Translations under genes and position numbers: made by a program
In this document: one piece after another, positions 4,703 to 57,200 of the stretch
Numbering within the stretch: position 1 is the first letter of the stretch
Layout: each line of letters begins with the position of its first letter
The notes under the pieces: generated by a model
The model's database searches: none
What the model saw: only the letters and a program-made list of their open reading frames with translations
Told to the model about the DNA's origin: nothing
Source of the DNA: Paragordius varius
Lineage: Eukaryota; Animalia; Nematomorpha
Reading direction: 5' to 3'
DNA length: 64,000 bases
Assembly: GCA_964247055.1 (NCBI GenBank)
Contig: OZ176053.1
Span: 3,596,001 to 3,660,000 of the forward strand

Positions 4703-5983
4703 TCATTTGTTTGGGTCTTTTGGTGAAGCTGCTACAGGGGGTGTTTTTAACTTCTCTCGAATTTTTTCGTTGGGTAAGTTTGGTTTCGGCAATGGACAGG
4801 GTAGTCTTGGCCTAGGTGGAATAGGTGGTAAATTTGTATTAAGTGGTTTCAAGTTAATCATTTGTTTGCTTTCGGGCATATTTTGAATAGGTGTTACCAT
4901 TTGACCCATTATTTTTATCTTTCCTGTTTCAGTTTTTCTATTTTCAATTACTGGACTTGTGTGATCGTGGGGAGTCATCTGTTTTTTCCCTAAATCTTTG
5001 GGTGTTGTAGGCTTATTTGTGGTTAAACTTTTGCCAACATTCATTTTTATATCTGATTTAGGTGAGTCCGGGGTTATCTCAGTTTTAGTTTCAATTTTAC
5101 TGGTAATCGGTTTTGGGAGTTTGGATATGTTCTTTGTTAGACTCGTTGGGCTTAAATTTACCCCTGACTTTTGCAGATAGCGTGCATCGTTTGGAGCGTT
5201 TATTTTTGGTAAAGTATAAACATTTTCATTCATAGGTCGCTCGAATTTTGGTATTTTAGATGTTTCATTTAGAGCATAGTTTTTTCCGATATTTGTTGTA
5301 ACATTGTGCTCTTTTTGATGTTCTAAATTTACGTTTTGCAGATACTTTTGTACACCAGGATATTTTAACTTCAATTGCTCAATAATGTGCCTTTCCTTTT
5401 CTGATTCGAGTTTTTTCCGTGTTTTCCAATCTTTAATGTAATTTTCTAAATCAAGGATCACATCTTGCACCATAACTTTGGCGTAAAATAATTTTTTTAT
5501 CTTTGCCGATAATATATCATTGCTTGATGATTGGTCTTTCCATTTAGAAAAACTATTCGTATTGTATTTCTGGTTTCCTTCATAACGAAAAGAATTATCG
5601 TATAGCGATACATCCCTTTCTCCAAAGTTATTTTCTTTATTCTTATCACTAGGTATAAATCGAGTATTGATATCTTCCGTAATTTTTTTATCAGTTTGAG
5701 CCAAATATGTATTATCATTTCTGGTGGTATTGTAACAAAATGAACTGCCATATTTTTGACATAAATAATCATTTAATACTTTATAATTTACACTTAATTT
5801 ATTATCATCGTTTTGGGAAATATAGTTAATATTGTTATCAAATGAAATTGAATTATTATTATCAATTATATTATTCTGCATCCTGAAATGATCTAAATAC
5901 AGGCTTAAAAGCGTACAGTTAGATACATATGGTATATATTGTTTAATTTTTGCTTCATCAAATATTGGTGGTGATGATAACAT
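4703..5983 (-). CDS. Uncharacterised protein of about 426 aa (Asn/Lys-rich, Pro-rich C-terminus); 5' end uncertain
   Basis: 1.3-kb stop-free frame in highly AT-rich DNA; first ATG at 5983; C-terminal PPIPPRPRLPCPLPKP; no domain recognised. Upstream exons are possible. Confidence 0.6.
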   Translation of the reverse strand: MLSSPPIFDEAKIKQYIPYVSNCTLLSLYLDHFRMQNNIIDNNNSISFDNNINYISQNDDNKLSVNYKVLNDYLCQKYGSSFCYNTTRNDNTYLAQTDKKITEDINTRFIPSDKNKENNFGERDVSLYDNSFRYEGNQKYNTNSFSKWKDQSSSNDILSAKIKKLFYAKVMVQDVILDLENYIKDWKTRKKLESEKERHIIEQLKLKYPGVQKYLQNVNLEHQKEHNVTTNIGKNYALNETSKIPKFERPMNENVYTLPKINAPNDARYLQKSGVNLSPTSLTKNISKLPKPITSKIETKTEITPDSPKSDIKMNVGKSLTTNKPTTPKDLGKKQMTPHDHTSPVIENRKTETGKIKIMGQMVTPIQNMPESKQMINLKPLNTNLPPIPPRPRLPCPLPKPNLPNEKIREKLKTPPVAASPKDPNK

Positions 5984-8903
5984 CTCAAAATAACTCAACA
6001 ATCAATCAATAAATATAATTTTCAAATCTGCAAGTTTTATGAAATATTTTATTTGACTTGGTATACCAATTTATATTAATCAAAATTAGCATAAATCGTA
6101 ATATTCAAACTTTTGATAACTGGAATAAAAAATGTATGGAAATTTATTATAAAGGATTCTGCCATCAGCATTAAAAAGAATAAAAATGGAAGTGTGAATA
6201 ATTGTTGCCGTATTTATTATTTAAATGACACGTTTTTAAATAAATTTCCAAATGTTTTTATACTTTCCACCTGTCGAAAATAAATGGTATTCTAGAATCT
6301 TAAAAGCCATACCTGCTATTTAAGAATTTTTTTAAAGTCTATATCAGAATTTAAAACGGGTATACTCATCGATTAACTTGATAAGATTGCTGAAAAAAAC
6401 CTTTTGGAATTAGTTGGTTTAGAAAATAAATTTTTTTACGCCACAATATCAAACTTAAAATTGGTAAAATATAAATTGATCCCATATTTATTTTGACTAT
6501 TAAGTGATAGGAGTGTTGTATAAATTTTAATGTAATTAAGTGATTTAGTGCCATATGAGCTTTCAGCCAGGCATTTCGTTAAATAAGCCGGCCAAAAAAT
6601 AAGTGGATGGCTCAAATAGGTCAAATGTTTTATGACTCAAAATTGGTTAAAATTCAAAACCTTATAAGCTAAAAATTAATAGAAAAATATAAATAAATAT
6701 AGTGTTTTAGCCAGCTTATTCGCATGGCTTATTCACGGGGAAATTTGAATCCGCTCTCAGATTGCCCTAACTGTTAATTTTAGGTATAAGACAACTTTTT
6801 AAAAACGTTGGATTATGTATTGTACTTTTAAGTTTTTAGACATTTTATAAACATATTTTTTATATGATTTATCCTATTAAATTTTTTTCAATAATTTTAT
6901 ATGTTAGTTTGTTGGGCCAGCTCATTATTTTTAAATGTTATAAAAAAATATAAAATTAATATACATAAGTTAATCATTAACACTATTGTATTCACATTTT
7001 TTTGTATTCAAAAACGTTACCCTCAAAATATAATTATGTAATTGCAGACATAGTGTTTTCAAAATGTATTTGAAAAACTCAATATACATCTAACTCTATT
7101 CTTTCTATCTGTAACTTATCTGCATTTATTTTGCGTCTTAGTATAATAAATGACATCCATCTTTTTATTGGAAGTGACTATAGTATGACTATAGTTTTAA
7201 TAAACTTTACCCTACATTATGATTCAAACCAATCTCATTTCAAAAAATTAATTTATTTTTAAAACCTCATGATTCAGTAGAAATTCGTTTACCTTTGAGA
7301 GCATGTTTGCGCCATATTCTTAGGCAGGCAAGTTAATGCAAATAACACCTTTTCTGCGATATTCTATGCGCAGTTTGCGAAACCTTGCTATCTCTTTTCG
7401 TAATTTATATGTAACTTTTTGGGGCAGACTCAAACACAAAATTTGTTTAAACCAGAACCAGACAAGTAGTTTTTAACGGTCATTAATATTCAATATTCTC
7501 CGATTTTTCGCAAAATCGGTTGCAAATGAGTTTGGAAAAAGTACAACTGATCCTGTATACCAAGGCTCTATAAGTAAACGTTACAAACATGCTCTAATTA
7601 TTAGGGACATAAAATATTTTTTGTAAATATTTATGATAAGAATATCTATGTTGTACCTTAAGAAATTGTAGCACTTTTAATAATCTTTTCTGATAACTGC
7701 TTAAAAATAACAATTTAAAATATATTATATTAATATTTGGCACTTTATGGTATAAATAAAATTTATTTATAAAATCATTGTAATAATATATCTGAAGACA
7801 ATACGTTCAAAATCATTATTTAAGCTAAATTTAACACTAAATTATTCCACAATCCAATAGTTCAATGATATCGGATGAAACGTCGAAGAATTCTTCTGGT
7901 AATCTTTGACATTTGTAGGCTATCCTAAGAAAATCCTTGAGGGATTTTAAAAAGAAAAATTTTTTTTCGGAAACGTCATTCTTTTTACTGTCACCATCGC
8001 TATTAATTAATTAAATATAATATTGGTTAGCGAAAAATGGTAATAATATTTGCAAATAGGTTGAAACATTCAATCATTATAATATTTCACTCCTATAAAT
8101 GACTTAACTTTGTTAAAATTTAAACTAAAATACATGCACAGGTTTATTTTAGCTTAAGTTTCGAGGGATGGGGATTTTTTGCAGTAAAGTATATAGCATT
8201 TACAATTTTACCATTTAATAATTTAATTAGTTAATCAGTAAAGGTATAATCTCAAAGGGTAATTAGAAATTAGGGCCATTCTCAATATCTAATACATAGT
8301 TTCCAAATTTCTCACCAATACAGTAAAAATTAAAATTATAAAGAAAAAGGCAAACAAAATGCTATATTTCATCATATGGAAAACCAGATATTTTTAACTT
8401 AATTTTTATTATAACCTATCCTCAGGTTGTAAAAAAGACCTAAATTAGTAGCACTCTGAATTATATATATACAATCGTAATAATTTAAATTATAGAAAAC
8501 TTAAAAAAGTATGGCTATATCTTATAACATTTTATCCTAGTTTTAATATTAAATTAGATATAATATTATGTTCCCCGCTCTGAAGCTCAATGTGTTATGG
8601 GTGGGTAGGGACCTTGACGGCTGGTGGCTGACGATATTCTGACGCTACACCCTTTACTTGTTTACTTGTATAATATTGTGTTAAAACACATTTAACACTT
8701 CCAATAACGTTAAGTTTGTAAAGATTAGCCTAACAAAAATTTAGTTGTTAAAATTGACCAATTTTCAAAAATTGCTTCATCATTTCTTTGTTTTATGAAT
8801 TCATTGAAATAAAATACAACTATTAATATTGATGATTAATGCATTAATCCGAAGTTGTAATGTTTTAAGTTTTTAATTTATCAAAGAATATTATTTTGTG
8901 AGA

Positions 8904-43774: not shown

Positions 43775-44155
43775 CACTTTGATTCAAATTGGGGTATCTA
43801 AATACCCCAGGCTAAATTTAAGTTGAGATTTCTACAAAACTACTAAAAGAAACGGTCTTTATTTAAATTTATACTTCTATCCCAATAAAAATATAAATAT
43901 GTCAAATTATCTAAATAAAATTTTGTTTTGAAAAAAAAGTTCCATGTCAAACTACTTGGACGCCATTTTTATTTTACAAAATTTTTGCAAAATATCGTCT
44001 TCATTTAATTTTAAGGGTAAAATTTAATCTATTTTTTTATTTAAATTACTTCTAACATTGATAGAAATAGAAAAATAGGTTTATTTTGTATTATATTTTA
44101 ATTTTACCACTGCACACATGTCAGGTTGACCAAATTTTTACCTTTTGGTTTCATT
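43775..44155. mobile_element. MITE family A, truncated copy
   Basis: TTAA|CACTTTGATTCAAATTGGGG; reverse complement of about 30365-30737; stops where the RTE LINE begins. Confidence 0.75.
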
Positions 44156-44164
44156 AAAACAACT

Positions 44165-46150
44165 TTTTATCAAACCGCTATTAAAGACAAAAACGGCAAA
44201 TTACTCGTTGAGGAAGTGAAAATTTTTGAAGAGATGCAAAGAATATTTCCAGGACCTAGAATTGGGCGTCAGTGAAACGATTTACCCGAAACACCAGATT
44301 ATATATCGTTGCAGATTGAAAGTGTAACAAACGAAGAAGTTCAGGTTGGTTTAGAAATGTCTATAAATAAGGCTGCAGGCCCAGACGATTATAACATAAA
44401 CTGTTGGAAAATAATGTCAGAGAAAGGTATTGAATTTTTAACGGATATTTTTAATAATGTAGTTACTACAGATATGATACCAACATGGAAGGAGAGCTTC
44501 ACTGTTCTTATTTTCAATGGTAAAGGAGATATTAATGACTGTAATAAATACAGAGGTACAAGATCGATGTCGCATACAATGAAGTTATTTGGATTACTAG
44601 AGAAACGAATGAGAAAAATAAATTGTATAGAGCAGGGATTCTTAAACTTTAGTAATTTCCGACCCCATTTATCATTGCAAGTTTCTTAACGACCCCAATA
44701 AATATATATGAAAAATAAATTAATATATTTATTAGGTAGCAATATACATATGCATATGTAAGTATATAAATTAATTCGTTTTGAAACATAAAAATCTAAA
44801 ATTGGAATTTGCGCAAAATGTTATAGAAATGTTTTTTATATAGTTTATAAAAAACATAAGTGGATTATGAACGTCTTAATTCTGATATATTTATCTACGA
44901 TATATAATTTTACAAGTTAAAAAACATTTTTTGTCAATTGGTATTTCAATCACTCGCGACCCCATCCAAATATGGTCGCGACCCATAGTTTAAGAAGCTC
45001 TGGTATAGAGGGTAGTCAATTTGGTTTTATTCTAGAAAGTCCACTATTGGTCCGATTCAGTAAGAAGGCTAATTGAAAAGCATATAGAAATGAAAAAGAA
45101 GTTGCATGGTATTTTAATCAATATTGAAAAGGCGTTTGACAGAATACCACGGAGTACAATATGGTGCAGTTTAAAACGAAAAACTGTTCCTGAGAGTTAC
45201 ATAAAAATTCTAAAAGCATGTACGGCTCTCACCATATTATAATTAAAACACATCAGGAAGTGTCAAATCATATTGAAATAAATTAAGGCGTCTATCAGGG
45301 GTCAGCAATCAGTCCGTTACTATTTAGAATATGCACGGAAGAAATTTCAAAAAATGTGGGGCAACATGGTGGCTGGTATTTTATTTATGCAGACAACCTA
45401 GTAGTGCTGTCAGACGAGTTGCATGAATTGAAAGAATTGGTGGGTAAATGGATTGATGTGTTAGGACGATGCGGTTTAAATGTTAATAAAAAGAAAACTT
45501 AACTTATAAATTTCGGTCTGAAAAAACAAGAAATGAAATTAGAAGAAGGATGGGTAATAGAAGGTCACGGGGAATGCAAATATTTGGGAGAGATTTTAGT
45601 AGCAGATGGTTTTTAACGCATGATATAAATCCAAGAATTTGAAATAGTTGGGCAAATATAAAAAGATCTCAAATGTTTTGTGCGATAAAAATATTGACCT
45701 AAAAGTCAATGGTTAGATTTACAGTGATGTTCAGCCAACAATGATCAACTCACAAACATGGGTAATAAAGAAATCAGAAAAGAGACACTTTGAGGTTACT
45801 GAAATGATAATGCTTAGATTGATTCGCGGTGTAACTAGGAATGACAAGGTGAAGAAAATTTACATAAGAGGAAGTACGGAAATCAAACCGGTAACGCAAA
45901 AGATGATTTACGTCTTGGATGGTTTGGACATGTAGAAAGAAGAGATAATAACTACACTGGTAAAAAGATTGATGATATATTGGGAAAGGTAAGAGGGCGC
46001 CCTAAAACGCGATGGATAGATACAGTTAAGAGGGACATGGTAAAACTGAACCTAAAACGTGAGGACGCCATAGACAGGGTTTTATGAAATAGTTAACGGA
46101 TATGACCACTCGAAAGTGGGATATCATATAATGTAATTATTATTATATTA
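44165..46150 (+). mobile_element. 5'-truncated, inactivated RTE-clade LINE
   Basis: KAAGPDD, KGDINDCNKYRG, QFGF, QGSAISPLLF, YADNL (catalytic YADD altered), KYLG, GHVERRD, GRPKTRWID; ends in (ATT)n at about 46135-46150. Confidence 0.88.
44633..45002. mobile_element. 370-bp hAT MITE inserted in the LINE
   Basis: TIRs CAGGGATTCTTAAACT / AGTTTAAGAAGCTCTG; perfect TSD GTATAGAG; removing it rejoins the RT reading CIE|GSQFGF. Confidence 0.92.
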
Positions 46151-49920: not shown

Positions 49921-50487
49921 TAGGGTTGTGCATTTGACTGCTTTTTCAAAAAGGTCCGGTCAGACCCAGTCAGACCATGGTCATGACCACTTTTTACTTA
50001 AGTAAGTATCAAGAGATAATTGTTTTCAAATGAATTTTGCCACATTTTTGTGGCCTTCTAAATCTTCAAATACATAGCTTTTAATACTGATTTCAAATAA
50101 AATTTTCCTAGTTTTACATCTTTATCATTAAAATATCCAATTATAGGATGTTTTTCATTTTGTTAGTTGACTTATATGGGATAATTACATATTTTGCAAA
50201 GTGCTTGATTGTTGTTTTTCGAAATAACTGGATATGCATAAATGCTTGTTGTAAGGAGACATGTTTAACAAATTTTAATATATTGTCAAATAAGCATATT
50301 TAAATATTTAATTTTTATTTTTTTAAATATATATTAAAAAAAATAAAATCTAACAATCTCTATCCCAAAAACTAACATTTTTTCAAAAACAAATGTTTTT
50401 AAATGACCATGGTCAAAAAATAAATATCACTGACCAAGTCATGACCCGTTCAATTGACCGGGCCATGATTTGGTCGGCACAACCCTA
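49921..50487 (+). mobile_element. 567-bp hAT MITE family B
   Basis: Perfect 11-bp TIR TAGGGTTGTGC; perfect TSD TATATACA; opposite orientation to 47763-48423. Confidence 0.92.
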
Positions 50488-51273: not shown

Positions 51274-54200
51274 ATGGCCGGATTAAGCGGAGTTATTATG
51301 AGATCATTCATACTATGGACAATTATTCCATTAGCATTGATTGCGGGTAACATTTACATCTATCTAAGTATAAATTCAAAAAAACCACTTTATATAAATT
51401 AAATTGGATAATAAAAAACAATATGATTTATTGGGGTATTTATGCTAGATATGTAATAATTTAATTTAAATGAAAAGTACCAGCTCAGTACAGACTGTGA
51501 ATATTAATCTGCAAAAACAAAATGTTTTATGAATAAGTAATTTGATAGTTTTATGAATTGTGTCGTCTTATGGAAATTGATATGAAATTGTTTCATAGAT
51601 TAGATGAGTGGTATTCAAACTGCGTGACACGGGCCGCATGCCGCCCTAGTGCTTTTTTGGACATGAATTATTTATTAATTATTTTGCTTTATTTATTTTG
51701 AGAATAAATATCTGCAAGTGTCAAATAGTATTGAAATTTTTATCCGTATTAAATGCGGCTCTTGAGACAATATTTTTTTACGGCCTTATTTTTTTGGTGA
51801 GTACCACTGGATTAGATCATATTTAAATTCAAATAAAATTATTTTTTATTAATTTTAGAATAAAGCCAAATTTATTGTTAAAAACTTTGTATAAATTAGT
51901 TTCTTTTTACTTGGCATTTAATCAGGCAGTAAAATTTACGTTATGACATGTGCTTGACAAAATTATATAGAAAAATACTATTATTTATTGAGAATTAGGT
52001 TTTACTGAAATTAATTGCATATTTCAAAAGCGGGTTTTTGTTTACTCACCATGAAATTTCTAAAATTAGTTGTCACTATATGGAAACAAAACTTATCACA
52101 ACTTAGGAAATCTTACAAAACGTGCTATGCAAAAACCACATCCGGTATTAAATTACATAAGCCATTAATGATTTACCTCTGCATTTCGCTTCTCTTGCAT
52201 CCATAATTTCACGTGAAAAGATTTTCCATGTCAGTGATGAATAATTTATGTTCTAGCCTCAAATGGGGAAAAAACATTAAATCTCCAAAGATTTAAAGAT
52301 TTCGTTCGTGTAAGAGACACTGATCTAGCACACATATATGTATGAGTACACCGTTATGTACTGCATATTACTCATGATATAAAAACTATAAAAAACGCAT
52401 TAATTTTTTGATAGGTCTGCAATAGATTTGAATTATAGTATAGATCAATCTTTGGTGGCGATAGAATTTTTATAGATAAAAGTGTTTGAATTGATGATTC
52501 CATCATGGAATAAAACATATATTTACTACAGATGTTTGTACTACGAATTTAGATTGAGTGAGAATAATATGTTTTGTTGGAATGAACCGTAAATAAGATG
52601 ATTGGGTAATATGATAAAATAACCCAAAGGCGTGTCTGAGATGCCATATATTATCCATTATCTCTGTTATCGATGAAATATTTTATATTCGCTAAAAAAG
52701 AATAAATATATAGTAATGGAAAAGTGGAATATTATGTATGTTGCATATAACAATTATTATTGATTAAATATTTATTTTTATCTATTCGCATATATATTTT
52801 GTTGTATATATAGCTAAAAGCCTTTATAGATATGTGTGTGTAACCATTTTGTTTACATTGGAAATGTTTGCAATTACACATTTATTTCATACCCTAATTT
52901 TTCTTTATTTATTTATCTGATATATCTATCTATATCTGCTTTAATTTAAGTTATAACTATATAACAATTATCATATTCTGTAAATATTTTATCAGTAGTA
53001 TTCTAATCCTTAATACCTTTTATATTTTATAATATCATCTTGGGTATGACAACCCAACACTTAATCATACCATGATTGAATATATATCTTATTGTTAAAA
53101 ATAAAATTTACACACCCAAAATTATTATATTTAATAAATTTTTACCTCAGGCTATGTTCGCAATTTTTTAATGTTTTTTTCACTAAAAATCCGATCAGAT
53201 GATCAGTTATGACTGAACGATATAACGATATAGTTTTATATTTTGGTAAATATAACGTTGTCGTATTAACAATTTAACTTAATATTTTAATGTGACAAAT
53301 TGGTTATTTTTTGATTTTTTTTATATTTTCTAATTTTCGCATGAAGAATGGAATATCTTCTCTCATAAATTTGAAATATGAGATTGTGTATTTTTTCCCT
53401 GTTTCTTATATTAATGTAAGGAAAAAATACCAACATTTTATTGATTAATATTTTAGTGTTAATTATTTCAATAACGATTTGTTTAGTATATATGTATATA
53501 TCTAAATTATCATCATTAATCCGTTACAAAATCAAAAAATTATCTGGTGGCAATCCCGTGGAATTAAACTCTATCCTCTATCCTTTTGAAAAAATAATTT
53601 GGTGCTAAAAAATCAATTATAAAATATTCTAATCATTATACATGATTATACAATTAAAAAATTAATCTATATATTATATAATATATATATATCCATATTA
53701 TCCTTATTTGTCACCCAAAATTGTCGTAATAATAATAAACTATTAAATGAGCATTTATCATGATATTAATAATCCTATATTATCTCAATCATCATCCCCA
53801 TCATCACTATCTAGTCAACCTCAACCTCAACAACAACATGAATTAAAAGATTTAAGTCCTTACCATTTTGCTGTTTCAAAAGAGGCCGCTCTTGGTGATA
53901 AAAAACAGACGACAGAAAATGATTCACATTTTTCAAACGAAAGTTTTAACCCTGAACACAATAATAATGTATTTGGTCTCAATGATGATAGAAAGGGAGA
54001 AGCTTATTCAAAATCATCATTTAATTCTTCGACAAAGCAATTGCCTTTTACCGGAGTGTCATCGATTCCTCCTTATACCAAGGCTGATTATGGATATCAA
54101 ACCCCAACAAGTGATAGCCCAAAGATTAGCTCCTCCTCTAAACTCAATACTGAAACGATTCTCCCGCCACCTGATAAAACCATCACCTCACATAATCCAA

Positions 54201-57200
54201 ATGATGTAATTAGCACAGAAAAGAACACGCATCAACAACGTCAACGACCATCCCTTATCAGTAAATTAATGCAAGCAGGTCGTGATTTTATCACCCCTAA
54301 CAACAACAGTAACAGTCATAAGATTATAGAAGGAAATATGATGGCCAGCAATAATAATAATAATCCTTCTAATCCTAATTCTAATAGTGGTTATCCCTCA
54401 GCAGACGAAACATCATCTAATGTTACAAATAGGTTGAATGATACAATAAATACCCCTCATAGTACGTATGATACGTTTACCCCATCAAAAACTACTACAA
54501 CATCATTCCTATCACCTTCATCGTCCCCGTATTCATTTGAGGGTGGTGAAAAACATCCAACTAATATATCCTACGATTCTGCCCAAAACATCAATAATCC
54601 ATACCTAAACGCCTCACAATATTTATTGTTACAGAATAAAGATCCCAATAAAAATTACTATAATTATTATCCCACTAATCCTTCCTCATCAACCACAACT
54701 TCTAGTAGTGATAAACAACCCATAACATATCTTTCCCTATCGTCACCTACTTCATCTGGGAGTATTGGGACGGTAGGACCTGGTCCCCATCCAATCAAAT
54801 CCATTTTAAAGCATCATCGTGATTTTATACCCACTTCTGCTTCAGCGACCCAACCCAAAAATGCCCTTCTATTTTCATCCTCTTCACCCGAAGATAATGC
54901 CAGTAATACGGATGACACCTCTTTAAGTGCGGGCTTTACCCCCTCAACCCAAAGAAGACCAAGTTTTTATTCATCACCGCGGAAACGGAGAGATCGTTTT
55001 GCCAGTCGGCCCTCTATTTTCACGACGCAAATGCGTTACGCTCATTACGTTTGTTCGGGCCTGTATGAGTTGTTAAACTTTGATTTCTGCTTGTTTCTCT
55101 TGATAAGTAAGACAGATCGATACCCATTTATTTTTGTATATATATATATATCGCACATATCAAACATGAATCAAATATAAACGTTTGTGTATATACATAA
55201 ATTTTATTGTGCTAACCACTGAAATTATATACTCACAGTGATTTTAAGCATTTGTGAGAATGATTTAAATACTATTTATTTTATAACCTTATCATCCTAT
55301 ATTTTTCATTATTTAGGTGCTATCCTACGAATCAATCTCATCTCATTGGTTTATTTAGTATTCATGTTGATTGTTCCCTTATTACCGACGCCAACGGCAC
55401 AATTTAAGCTGGGTTATTTTTTTATTATGTTTCACAAAATCTAGATGAATGTCGGACAATGTTTTAAGTTTAATTTTGTAAAAACAATAAATCTTTTGTT
55501 GTTTTTAATCTATTATCCAAATAGATTTTATTGGCCAATTATTTTGGTATAATATTATCATATAAACTAATAATATAAATTTTTCGCGTATTTATTACTA
55601 AATCTACTTTAAATCTTTGTTTTAGCCTATTTTTGAATTATATAAAGACTTAAATAATTTGGTGACCGTTGTAATGTTTGTTCACTGTCTATAATAACGA
55701 TACATTTAGGTTATAAAATATATAAATTTTAAATCAAAGCTGATCAATTATTTAGATTATAAATGACCCCTGACTGAAAAAAGGGGTTATTTAATTTTCA
55801 AACTATAAATATTATTTATTTATTTTTATAAAGGGCACACCGGAAGATTCCTCAAATGTGTCATGATATTCAGTGCTTTAGCTTGTATTGCACACATTAT
55901 TTTCCATGTAACACTTTTGGCGTTACCTCCATACGGGCATATGTTTCACAATTGTAAGTTATCTACAACAGTCATTTAAAATTTTATTTTTTGATCATAT
56001 ATGACCTGGTAACCTTTGATTTGAAAAATTTATTTTTGGATCTATTTTGCCTTTAAAATTTAAGTTGTTTAACATAAATAGAGATGTTTAAATATTTTTT
56101 TTAAAAAATACTTTTTATTCCAATCAGTAATATAGAGTTGATTAAAATGGAAAATTAGTTAATTATTTTTTTGATTTAGAGAGAGGATAATATCATTACA
56201 ATTATATTAATAGTAAAACAAATGAAGATGCATACAAATTTAGGATGTATAAACATCCAAAAAATCATTATCTTACCATTCTTATATTATATTATTATTA
56301 TTATTATTATTATTGTAAATTACTTTTATTTGGCTGAAATATATATGTACTACTTTTAAGGCATACACGTCGTCCTATTTTATTGATTTTTTTATCTTAA
56401 AAAATTTGCTCCACAAAATGAAAATAGATAGATGAATTTTTAGCGTTAACAAAGTTAAAAGGAATGGTGCAAATCAATATCTTTACTCCATATTCTATAT
56501 ATGGCTAAAACTGTTTTTTTTGAAATACACTTTTATTTATAGTAAATTATATTTATAAAAATATTTTACGCAATTTTTAATAGATTTTTTACCCAATGGA
56601 CATAATAATTTTTAAATAAAACATAAGCTATAACTCCTGAATCGCCTTTAAAATGTATAATGCCTATATTTTGGCATTCTAAATAAATGTAATAATTTAA
56701 ATTGTTTAAATATCTGTCTTTAAAACATAATATGTTTCTCGTTATTGTTCTTTAATTATACAAGTTTTACCACAAAACATTTTTTACTATAAAATAATTT
56801 TTTTATGGATTGTCTAATTTTAGTCCTTTCTGCAAAATATCTGTACCACTTATCGCCTTTATGGGCAGTTGTTTCAAAATTTCTTGAAATTTTACATTTT
56901 AAAATATAGACTTATTATTACTTTTTGGCAGCTTCCAACCTATCATTAAAATATATAAAATTGTGGATTCCATTAAAATTTAATCATAATTTAGAAAATT
57001 TTTTAGAATGAAGTTTAAAAAACACTTAAAGTATTAATCAAACCCACTAAGCCATTTAAGTGTTGAACACCCCTCCTGATTTATGACATACAATAAAATT
57101 TGGTTTAATCAAATATTTTTTAACGGTAAAAGAGATTAAAAAAATGTGTGTTCCCCCCTTTTAGGTACACGCATGGAACGTATCGTACGTGAAATTGGTT

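Follow-up and report, generated by a model that had tools for sequence, protein, structure and literature searches.

The 64,000-nucleotide (nt) stretch of Paragordius varius (Nematomorpha) contig OZ176053.1 analysed in this study (assembly GCA_964247055.1, positions 3,596,001 to 3,660,000; hereafter ‘the window’, numbered from its first letter) is AT-rich, with a GC content of approximately 26%, and carries on its plus strand, from approximately 51.3 kilobases (kb) to its end, the 5′ portion of a gene for Piezo. The identity of this gene is given by matches to the Pfam family Piezo_TM1-24 (PF24871), which fall in colinear plus-strand exons at 55317, 57146, 59670 and 62802, in the order of the profile and with E values down to 3.5e-97. 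Just upstream of the first of these exons lies the longest open reading frame (ORF) of the window, an ATG-initiated frame of 477 amino acids (53747–55180, plus strand). A preliminary description of the locus had proposed that most of this frame is an alternative first exon of Piezo, encoding a long disordered N-terminal extension and its own version of the first transmembrane helix (TM1). By reading the locus exon by exon and comparing it with its counterpart in a second horsehair worm, Gordionus sp. m RMFG-2023, we find this proposal partly supported, and strengthened by conservation across the two genera. The features on which the argument depends are the following, all on the plus strand.

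51274–51346 (+): Piezo exon 1a, the canonical short first coding exon (mini-exon scan, direct reading, Gordionus counterpart).
53747–54979 (+): variable part of exon 1b, 411 codons, rich in Ser, Asn, Pro and Thr and predicted to be disordered (open frame, composition, AlphaFold2 (AF2)).
54245–54292 (+): short predicted helix in the extension, residues 167–182, overlapping a 10-residue motif; a lead only (AF2, motif common to Gordionus).
54980–55106 (+): conserved part of exon 1b, residues 412–453 plus 1 nt, comprising a basic juxtamembrane motif and a putative alternative TM1 helix (HMMER, ratio of non-synonymous to synonymous divergence (dN/dS), blastn, AF2).
55031–55033 (+): conserved internal ATG, Met429 (scan, codon alignment).
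55107–55316 (+): 210-nt intron with donor GTAAGA, a (TA)n repeat at approximately 55124–55162, and a polypyrimidine tract and AG acceptor; neither AATAAA nor ATTAAA occurs in it, and the stop reached by reading through the donor is at 55178–55180.
55317–55412 (+): Piezo exon 2, 96 nt, phase-1 entry and exit, encoding the end of TM1, the RIN loop and TM2 (Pfam, Piezo1 alignment).

Exon 1a consists of 24 codons, beginning with ATG, and one further nucleotide before a phase-1 donor (G/GTAACA). It emerged from a scan of 40.6–55.2 kb for short hydrophobic exons that open with ATG and close at a phase-1 donor, and was then read directly, which supplies a location for the 24-codon canonical exon that the preliminary description had invoked and places exon 1b inside intron 1 (51347–55316). 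Another candidate for exon 1, a 34-codon hydrophobic ATG-initiated frame at 50148–50250 (+) with a phase-1 GTAAGG donor, was rejected: Gordionus lacks a counterpart of it, its spacing to exon 2 is wrong, and it is probably a chance occurrence. The notion that exon 1b is the sole first exon was likewise dropped once exon 1a had been found in both species.

We delimit exon 1b as 53747–55106, that is, 1,360 nt or 453 codons plus 1 nt. It has its own ATG, one codon downstream of an in-frame TAA, and it ends upstream of the shared exon 2 at a consensus donor (AA/GTAAGA, at 55106/55107) in phase 1, the same phase as that of exon 1a. The acceptor of exon 2 (TTTAG/GT, at 55316/55317) follows after an intron of 210 nt, and joining the two exons yields the junction codon A+GT (Ser) followed by AILRINLISLVYL, with the frame preserved. 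The exon size, its position within intron 1, the donor and the in-frame junction are all as the preliminary description had given them. Exon 2 matches positions 1–25 of the PF24871 profile, and residues 24–48 of the mouse Piezo1 chain align with exon 2 residues 2–26. Canonical Piezo therefore has only approximately 23 residues before this point, in keeping with the earlier statement that it starts near TM1, and the last approximately 22 residues of exon 1b occupy the place of the TM1 encoded by exon 1. Within exon 1b, an internal methionine (Met429, ATG at 55031–55033) stands 25 codons before the donor; counted from this residue, exon 1b matches a canonical first exon in size.

An exhaustive HMMER search of 1.84 billion representatives recovered a single relative of the window ORF, a protein of 257 amino acids recorded as an ‘unnamed protein product’ (P0001, CAK9295695.1) in the Gordionus assembly GCA_954871325.2; query residues 412–453 align with its residues 212–253 at 79% identity (E value 1.1e-10). 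A word-indexed protein search with the whole of exon 1b, in which low-complexity words swamped the candidates, returned no relative, and its region-restricted repeats gave only the same Gordionus ORF. Composition-adjusted BLASTP did not report the match in the tail of exon 1b, which HMMER, tblastn and blastn do report. Pfam scans assigned neither the window ORF nor the Gordionus protein to a family, and the window ORF had no exact match on record among public assemblies.

The Gordionus ORF (L001:10001–10774, where L001 is our numbering of the locus on OX940784.2, positions 20,472,461–20,493,234) lies inside the annotated Piezo gene, on the same strand, between that gene’s own exon 1a and exon 2. 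In this annotation, which was produced by BRAKER1/2 with TSEBRA, the Piezo product has 2,861 amino acids and carries PF24871, PF15917, PF23188, PF24874 and PF12166. It starts at exon 1a (L001:1532–1604), which again has 24 codons plus 1 nt, ends at G/GTAAAT and is 48% identical to exon 1a of the window. The Gordionus exon 1b (L001:10001–10762, 253 codons) ends at a phase-1 donor (ATAG/GTAAAA) at the codon identical to that of the window donor; past this point the open frame continues for 24 codons through the (TA)n repeat in the window, compared with 4 codons in Gordionus. Exon 2 (L001:14280–14375) also has 96 nt and a phase-1 entry, and is 65% identical to that of the window. Both genera thus keep 1a, 1b and exon 2 in this sequence and on one strand, with phase-1 donors at both first exons and with exon 1a and exon 2 unchanged in size, while the introns have diverged in length, from 210 nt in the window to 3,517 nt in Gordionus between exon 1b and exon 2, and from 4.0 to 12.7 kb between exon 1a and exon 2. 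The preliminary description had named conservation in relatives as a check on its proposal; the arrangement, the donor phase and the peptide at the end of exon 1b are indeed conserved.

Over the last 38 codons of exon 1b the peptides of the two worms agree at 84% of residues, a higher identity than that of exon 2 (65%) or exon 1a (48%). These codons hold 19 differences, 13 synonymous and 6 non-synonymous, which by the Nei–Gojobori method (NG86) correspond to a dN of 0.13, a dS of approximately 1.8 and a dN/dS of 0.07; judged by these values, the tail of exon 1b is under strong purifying selection and its synonymous sites are saturated. In a blastn comparison of window positions 46–60 kb with the 20.7-kb Gordionus locus, the sole significant block covers 54992–55110 and L001:10646–10764 (E value 1e-21), and it stops at 55110, 4 nt past the exon 1b donor. 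The conserved block reads RKR(R)-D-R-F-[AL]-S-R-P-S-I-F-T-T-Q-M-R-Y-[AF]-H-Y-V-C-S-G-L-Y-E-L-L and then enters a hydrophobic run. Met429 is conserved in Gordionus, as are the 13 aligned residues just before it, where six synonymous differences accompany one non-synonymous difference; coding therefore extends upstream of Met429. A partial list of the best-supported variants in four DNA sequencing runs, which serves as illustration only, places two synonymous variants in the conserved tail, and in the extension two synonymous and four non-synonymous variants and one 3-nt deletion.

Three local observations belong beside this block. A stretch of approximately 23 nt, encoding H-Y-V-C-S-G-L-Y (window 55004–55030, L001 10658–10684), is identical in the two species including third positions, despite the saturated dS, and may reflect either an extra constraint at the RNA level or chance. 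The (TA)n microsatellite at 55124–55162, just 3′ of the exon 1b donor, was flagged as a repeat of the kind that cuts reads or breaks contigs. Next to it, at 55117–55123, three variants fall within 7 nt.

Chance is excluded as the origin of the open frame of exon 1b. Given the exon’s own base composition, the probability of meeting no stop in 453 codons is approximately 2e-12, and none of 2,000 shuffled versions remained open; for the Gordionus ORF the corresponding probability is approximately 3e-6. The GC content of exon 1b is 0.38, as against 0.215 in the neighbouring Piezo intron (55950–57140), and the two extensions reach 0.38 (window) and 0.40 (Gordionus) in flanks of approximately 0.22. 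In both species the start ATG comes one to three codons after an in-frame stop. At a dS near 2, a sequence that is not translated would not have kept its frame free of stops in the two species alike.

AF2 places a terminal helix at residues 424–452 in the window protein (predicted local distance difference test (pLDDT) approximately 87) and at residues 224–252 in that of Gordionus. The hydrophobic run preceding the exon 1b donor is approximately 16 residues long and includes a conserved Glu and a conserved Asp; the maximum Kyte–Doolittle hydropathy over a 19-residue window, 1.68, is reached at the very end of the exon. Exon 2 contributes x-A-I-[LI] before an Arg, which completes a helix of normal transmembrane length. 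From the alignment of exon 2 with mouse Piezo1, this helix is positionally equivalent to the TM1 of Piezo. The basic cluster before it fits a cytoplasmic N-terminus, and in both species the sequence RKR is followed there by RxRxxSxP, which matches both RxRxxS and RxxSxP. The first of these patterns is the consensus of the AGC (basophilic) kinases and the second a mode-1-like consensus for 14-3-3 binding, and RKR is the arginine-type endoplasmic reticulum (ER)-retention pattern of some channels. That a block of 38 residues is better conserved than the neighbouring Piezo exons at saturated synonymous divergence suggests that something binds to it or packs against it.

The extension that precedes the conserved block has 411 residues in the window and 211 in Gordionus. 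Ser, Thr, Asn, Pro and Gln make up 53% of the window extension, and both extensions fall on the disordered side of the charge–hydropathy boundary. Single-sequence AF2, which is a weak test when no alignment is supplied, gives pLDDT values below 50 for nearly the whole of the window extension and for more than half of that of Gordionus. The extension is thus predicted to be intrinsically disordered in both species, as the preliminary description had supposed, with a length before the conserved block of 411 residues in place of its figure of approximately 430. The same description called the extension rich in SP/TP and RRxS sites: 13 SP/TP sites, which lie in unconserved sequence, bear out the first, and a single strict RRxS (RRPS, residue 403) falls short of the second. 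The only confident helix predicted inside the window extension spans residues 170–182 (pLDDT approximately 80); Gordionus has one at 109–121 and an adjacent one at 91–106, both moderately confident. A 10-residue pattern, RxSL[IL]S[KR][LI][MF]Q, is shared by the two extensions (window 54245–54274, Gordionus protein residues 114–123) and overlaps the internal helix in both; not significant by itself, it could be either a short linear motif kept by both species or a product of chance, and we record it as a lead only.

Taken together, these data make it probable that exon 1b is an alternative first exon and that its use yields a Piezo extended at the N-terminus, with a TM1 of its own preceded by a conserved basic juxtamembrane motif. 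From the observed exon anatomy, frame compatibility, conservation and selection we infer splicing to exon 2, a separate promoter and a function. On this model, nematomorph Piezo would have two alternative first coding exons, each joined to the shared exon 2 through a phase-1 junction. The canonical protein, starting almost directly at TM1, would come from exon 1a, and exon 1b (453 codons; 253 in Gordionus) would presumably be transcribed from its own start site within intron 1. Use of exon 1b would swap TM1 for a different, highly conserved helix preceded by the motif RKR(R)-D-R-F-x-S-R-P-S-I-F-T-T-Q, upstream of which would come a long, fast-evolving disordered region in which Ser, Thr, Asn and Pro abound. 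An alternative first exon accounts for the end of the conserved part at a consensus donor whose phase suits exon 2, for the sense orientation of the ORF inside intron 1 in the two genera, for the lack of conservation past the donor and for a helix that only exon 2 makes complete.

Piezo has 38 membrane helices, an even number, and its C-terminus is cytoplasmic, so that its N-terminus lies on that side as well. The extension would therefore project into the cytoplasm at the distal end of each blade. The juxtamembrane motif, in which a putative basophilic-kinase site (RxRxxS) overlaps a 14-3-3-type site (RxxSxP) beside an RKR cluster, could serve isoform-specific control of trafficking, clustering or tethering, and the disordered part could act as a spacer or as a scaffold of short linear motifs. 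The ‘phospho-regulatable or tethering’ role suggested earlier would fit the conserved RxRxxSxP, but the numerous SP/TP sites fall in unconserved sequence. More speculative, and held by us as a tentative picture, is a second, promoter-specific Piezo isoform of horsehair worms in which the outermost blade helix is exchanged and a conserved kinase/14-3-3-type switch is combined with a long disordered tether, together forming a cytoplasmic handle for channel placement or cytoskeletal coupling, of a kind not known to have been reported for any Piezo.

Several results weigh against an alternative first exon. The Gordionus annotation treats CAK9295695.1 as a separate single-exon gene, and its longest Piezo product begins at exon 1a. 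The five sequencing runs that cover the window locus are genomic DNA, and the four that were mapped have even depth over the introns and no splice joints. The comparison is limited to two species, whose extensions cannot be aligned with each other (Smith–Waterman score against shuffled sequences, p = 0.24). Searches with phmmer using 53- and 25-residue tails of exon 1b also returned no match among PDB chains at E values up to 10. Exon 1a likewise found no match among those chains, so that this test of homology has low power for segments so short. Since neither the tail of exon 1b nor exon 1a has detectable similarity to Piezo, the label ‘TM1’ rests on position, not on homology; of the earlier claim that the hydrophobic stretch replaces TM1, the helix at residues 424–452 in TM1’s place stands, and sequence homology to Piezo TM1 was not detected.

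The main alternative, which we nonetheless consider unlikely, is that the ORF is an orphan gene of its own, located within intron 1 of Piezo and read in the same direction. Its product would be a tail-anchored protein with a disordered cytoplasmic N-terminus and one C-terminal helix, followed by a short luminal segment that stops at 55180, and its transcript would never be joined to exon 2. Tail-anchored proteins have a single hydrophobic transmembrane domain of approximately 18–25 residues, situated within approximately 30 residues of the C-terminus, and are made from an independent mRNA. The unspliced ORF is complete from ATG to stop in both species, BRAKER/TSEBRA called it as a single-exon gene in Gordionus, and the mapped sequencing runs, all DNA, have no splice joint at the window locus. 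The topology would also suit a tail anchor, with basic residues before a helix that is followed by 24 residues in the window or 4 in Gordionus. Like a tail-anchored protein, the unspliced product would have one helix near its C-terminus and the bulk of its N-terminal part in the cytoplasm; unlike one, its helix is short before the donor and contains the conserved Glu and Asp, which would make it a poor anchor, and its conserved part ends at a splice donor. The residues after the donor, which a nested gene would need as its C-terminus, are unconserved and cross a (TA)n microsatellite. A nested gene would further require a coincidence in both genera: an orphan that has no other relatives would have to fall, in the sense orientation, into precisely this intron, and its conserved part would have to end at a consensus GT in the phase of exon 2. 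In the window only 137 nt separate its stop from exon 2 and they contain neither AATAAA nor ATTAAA, a weak argument given a probability of approximately 0.28 by chance. The Gordionus record CAK9295695.1 is probably a mis-split of the Piezo alternative first exon that reads four codons through a consensus donor.

It is improbable, to a degree beyond that of the nested gene, that exon 1b is a real coding exon within some other transcript architecture, its donor joining an exon other than exon 2, or exon 1b being the main first exon and exon 1a a rare one. The better conservation of exon 1b than of exon 1a would agree with such an arrangement. Set against this, exon 2 offers the next acceptor, 210 nt downstream and in the correct phase, and the Gordionus gene model makes use of exon 1a, whose length and phase are conserved. 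Least probable is translation from Met429 (55031) in a transcript that does join exon 1b to Piezo, giving a protein of canonical length with an alternative TM1 and leaving the upstream 428 codons as a 5′ leader: Met429 is conserved and the 25 codons plus 1 nt that follow it equal exon 1a in size, but the 13 residues just upstream are conserved too (six synonymous differences against one non-synonymous), the further 411 and 211 codons have been kept open despite a dS of approximately 1.8 and a stop probability of approximately 5.8% per codon, and scanning ribosomes would reach the upstream in-frame ATG first.

An alternative first exon of this kind falls under the known diversity of Piezo isoforms that arises through alternative 5′ ends. 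In Caenorhabditis elegans, differential splicing and transcription start sites give pezo-1 14 mRNAs with a common C-terminus, and PEZO-1 carrying an N-terminal green fluorescent protein (GFP) fusion is expressed at the plasma membrane (PMC7340503). As with pezo-1, a single invertebrate Piezo gene would produce N-terminally differing proteins by means of alternative starts while retaining a shared C-terminal pore. Unlike the pezo-1 isoforms, which differ by length (longest versus shortest) and for which PMC7340503 describes no disordered extension or exchange of TM1, the two nematomorph forms would have an equal number of helices with a different first helix, and the longer would have 411 (window) or 211 (Gordionus) extra residues. 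No Piezo bearing an N-terminal extension, or an alternative first exon that swaps TM1, came up in a literature search of incomplete coverage.

Relative to the canonical mouse Piezo1 and Piezo2 (structures such as 6B3R and 6KG7), the form starting at exon 1a is alike in having approximately 25 residues before the segment encoded by exon 2. The solved Piezos lack a cytoplasmic N-terminal domain; the exon 1b form would differ from them in adding one at the blade tip, and its first helix has no detectable similarity to theirs. A comparable gene architecture occurs in myosin-15, where an alternatively used giant exon encodes a 133-kDa N-terminal domain in a protein of mechanotransduction (PMC4592939). 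In that account, as proposed here, one gene makes a short and a long form, a big N-terminal domain derives from a single large exon, and there the isoforms have specific roles. Unlike Piezo, myosin-15 is a soluble motor, unrelated to it, and the analogy is one of gene architecture only. For the juxtamembrane motif, the nearest comparison is with channels such as Kir6.2/SUR1 (RKR) and TASK, in which arginine-based ER-retention signals are paired with phospho-dependent 14-3-3 sites. The succession of RKR and RxRxxSxP in both horsehair worms resembles these channels as a short pattern match only, and we do not claim membership in that class.

Piezo blades are believed to respond to the curvature and tension of the membrane; of all parts of the channel, the distal blade tips are understood least. 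If the alternative-first-exon model is true, a natural TM1-swapped isoform bearing a regulated disordered arm would test the use of the blade tip for tethering, clustering or trafficking control.

Three further elements were noted outside the first-exon region. On the minus strand of the window, at 4706–6001, a 432-amino-acid open frame without a Pfam match is the second longest of the window. On the plus strand, at 44126–45935, between DHODH and Piezo exon 1a, short ORFs resemble broken pieces of a reverse transcriptase (a putative long interspersed nuclear element (LINE) remnant), of which the piece at 44309–44686 gave no match to Pfam. An element absent from the window’s counterpart region occurs in a Gordionus Piezo intron, where an intact ORF of 433 amino acids (L001:18788–20089, minus strand) with an hAT dimerisation domain (PF05699, E value 1.3e-7) looks like an hAT transposase insertion.

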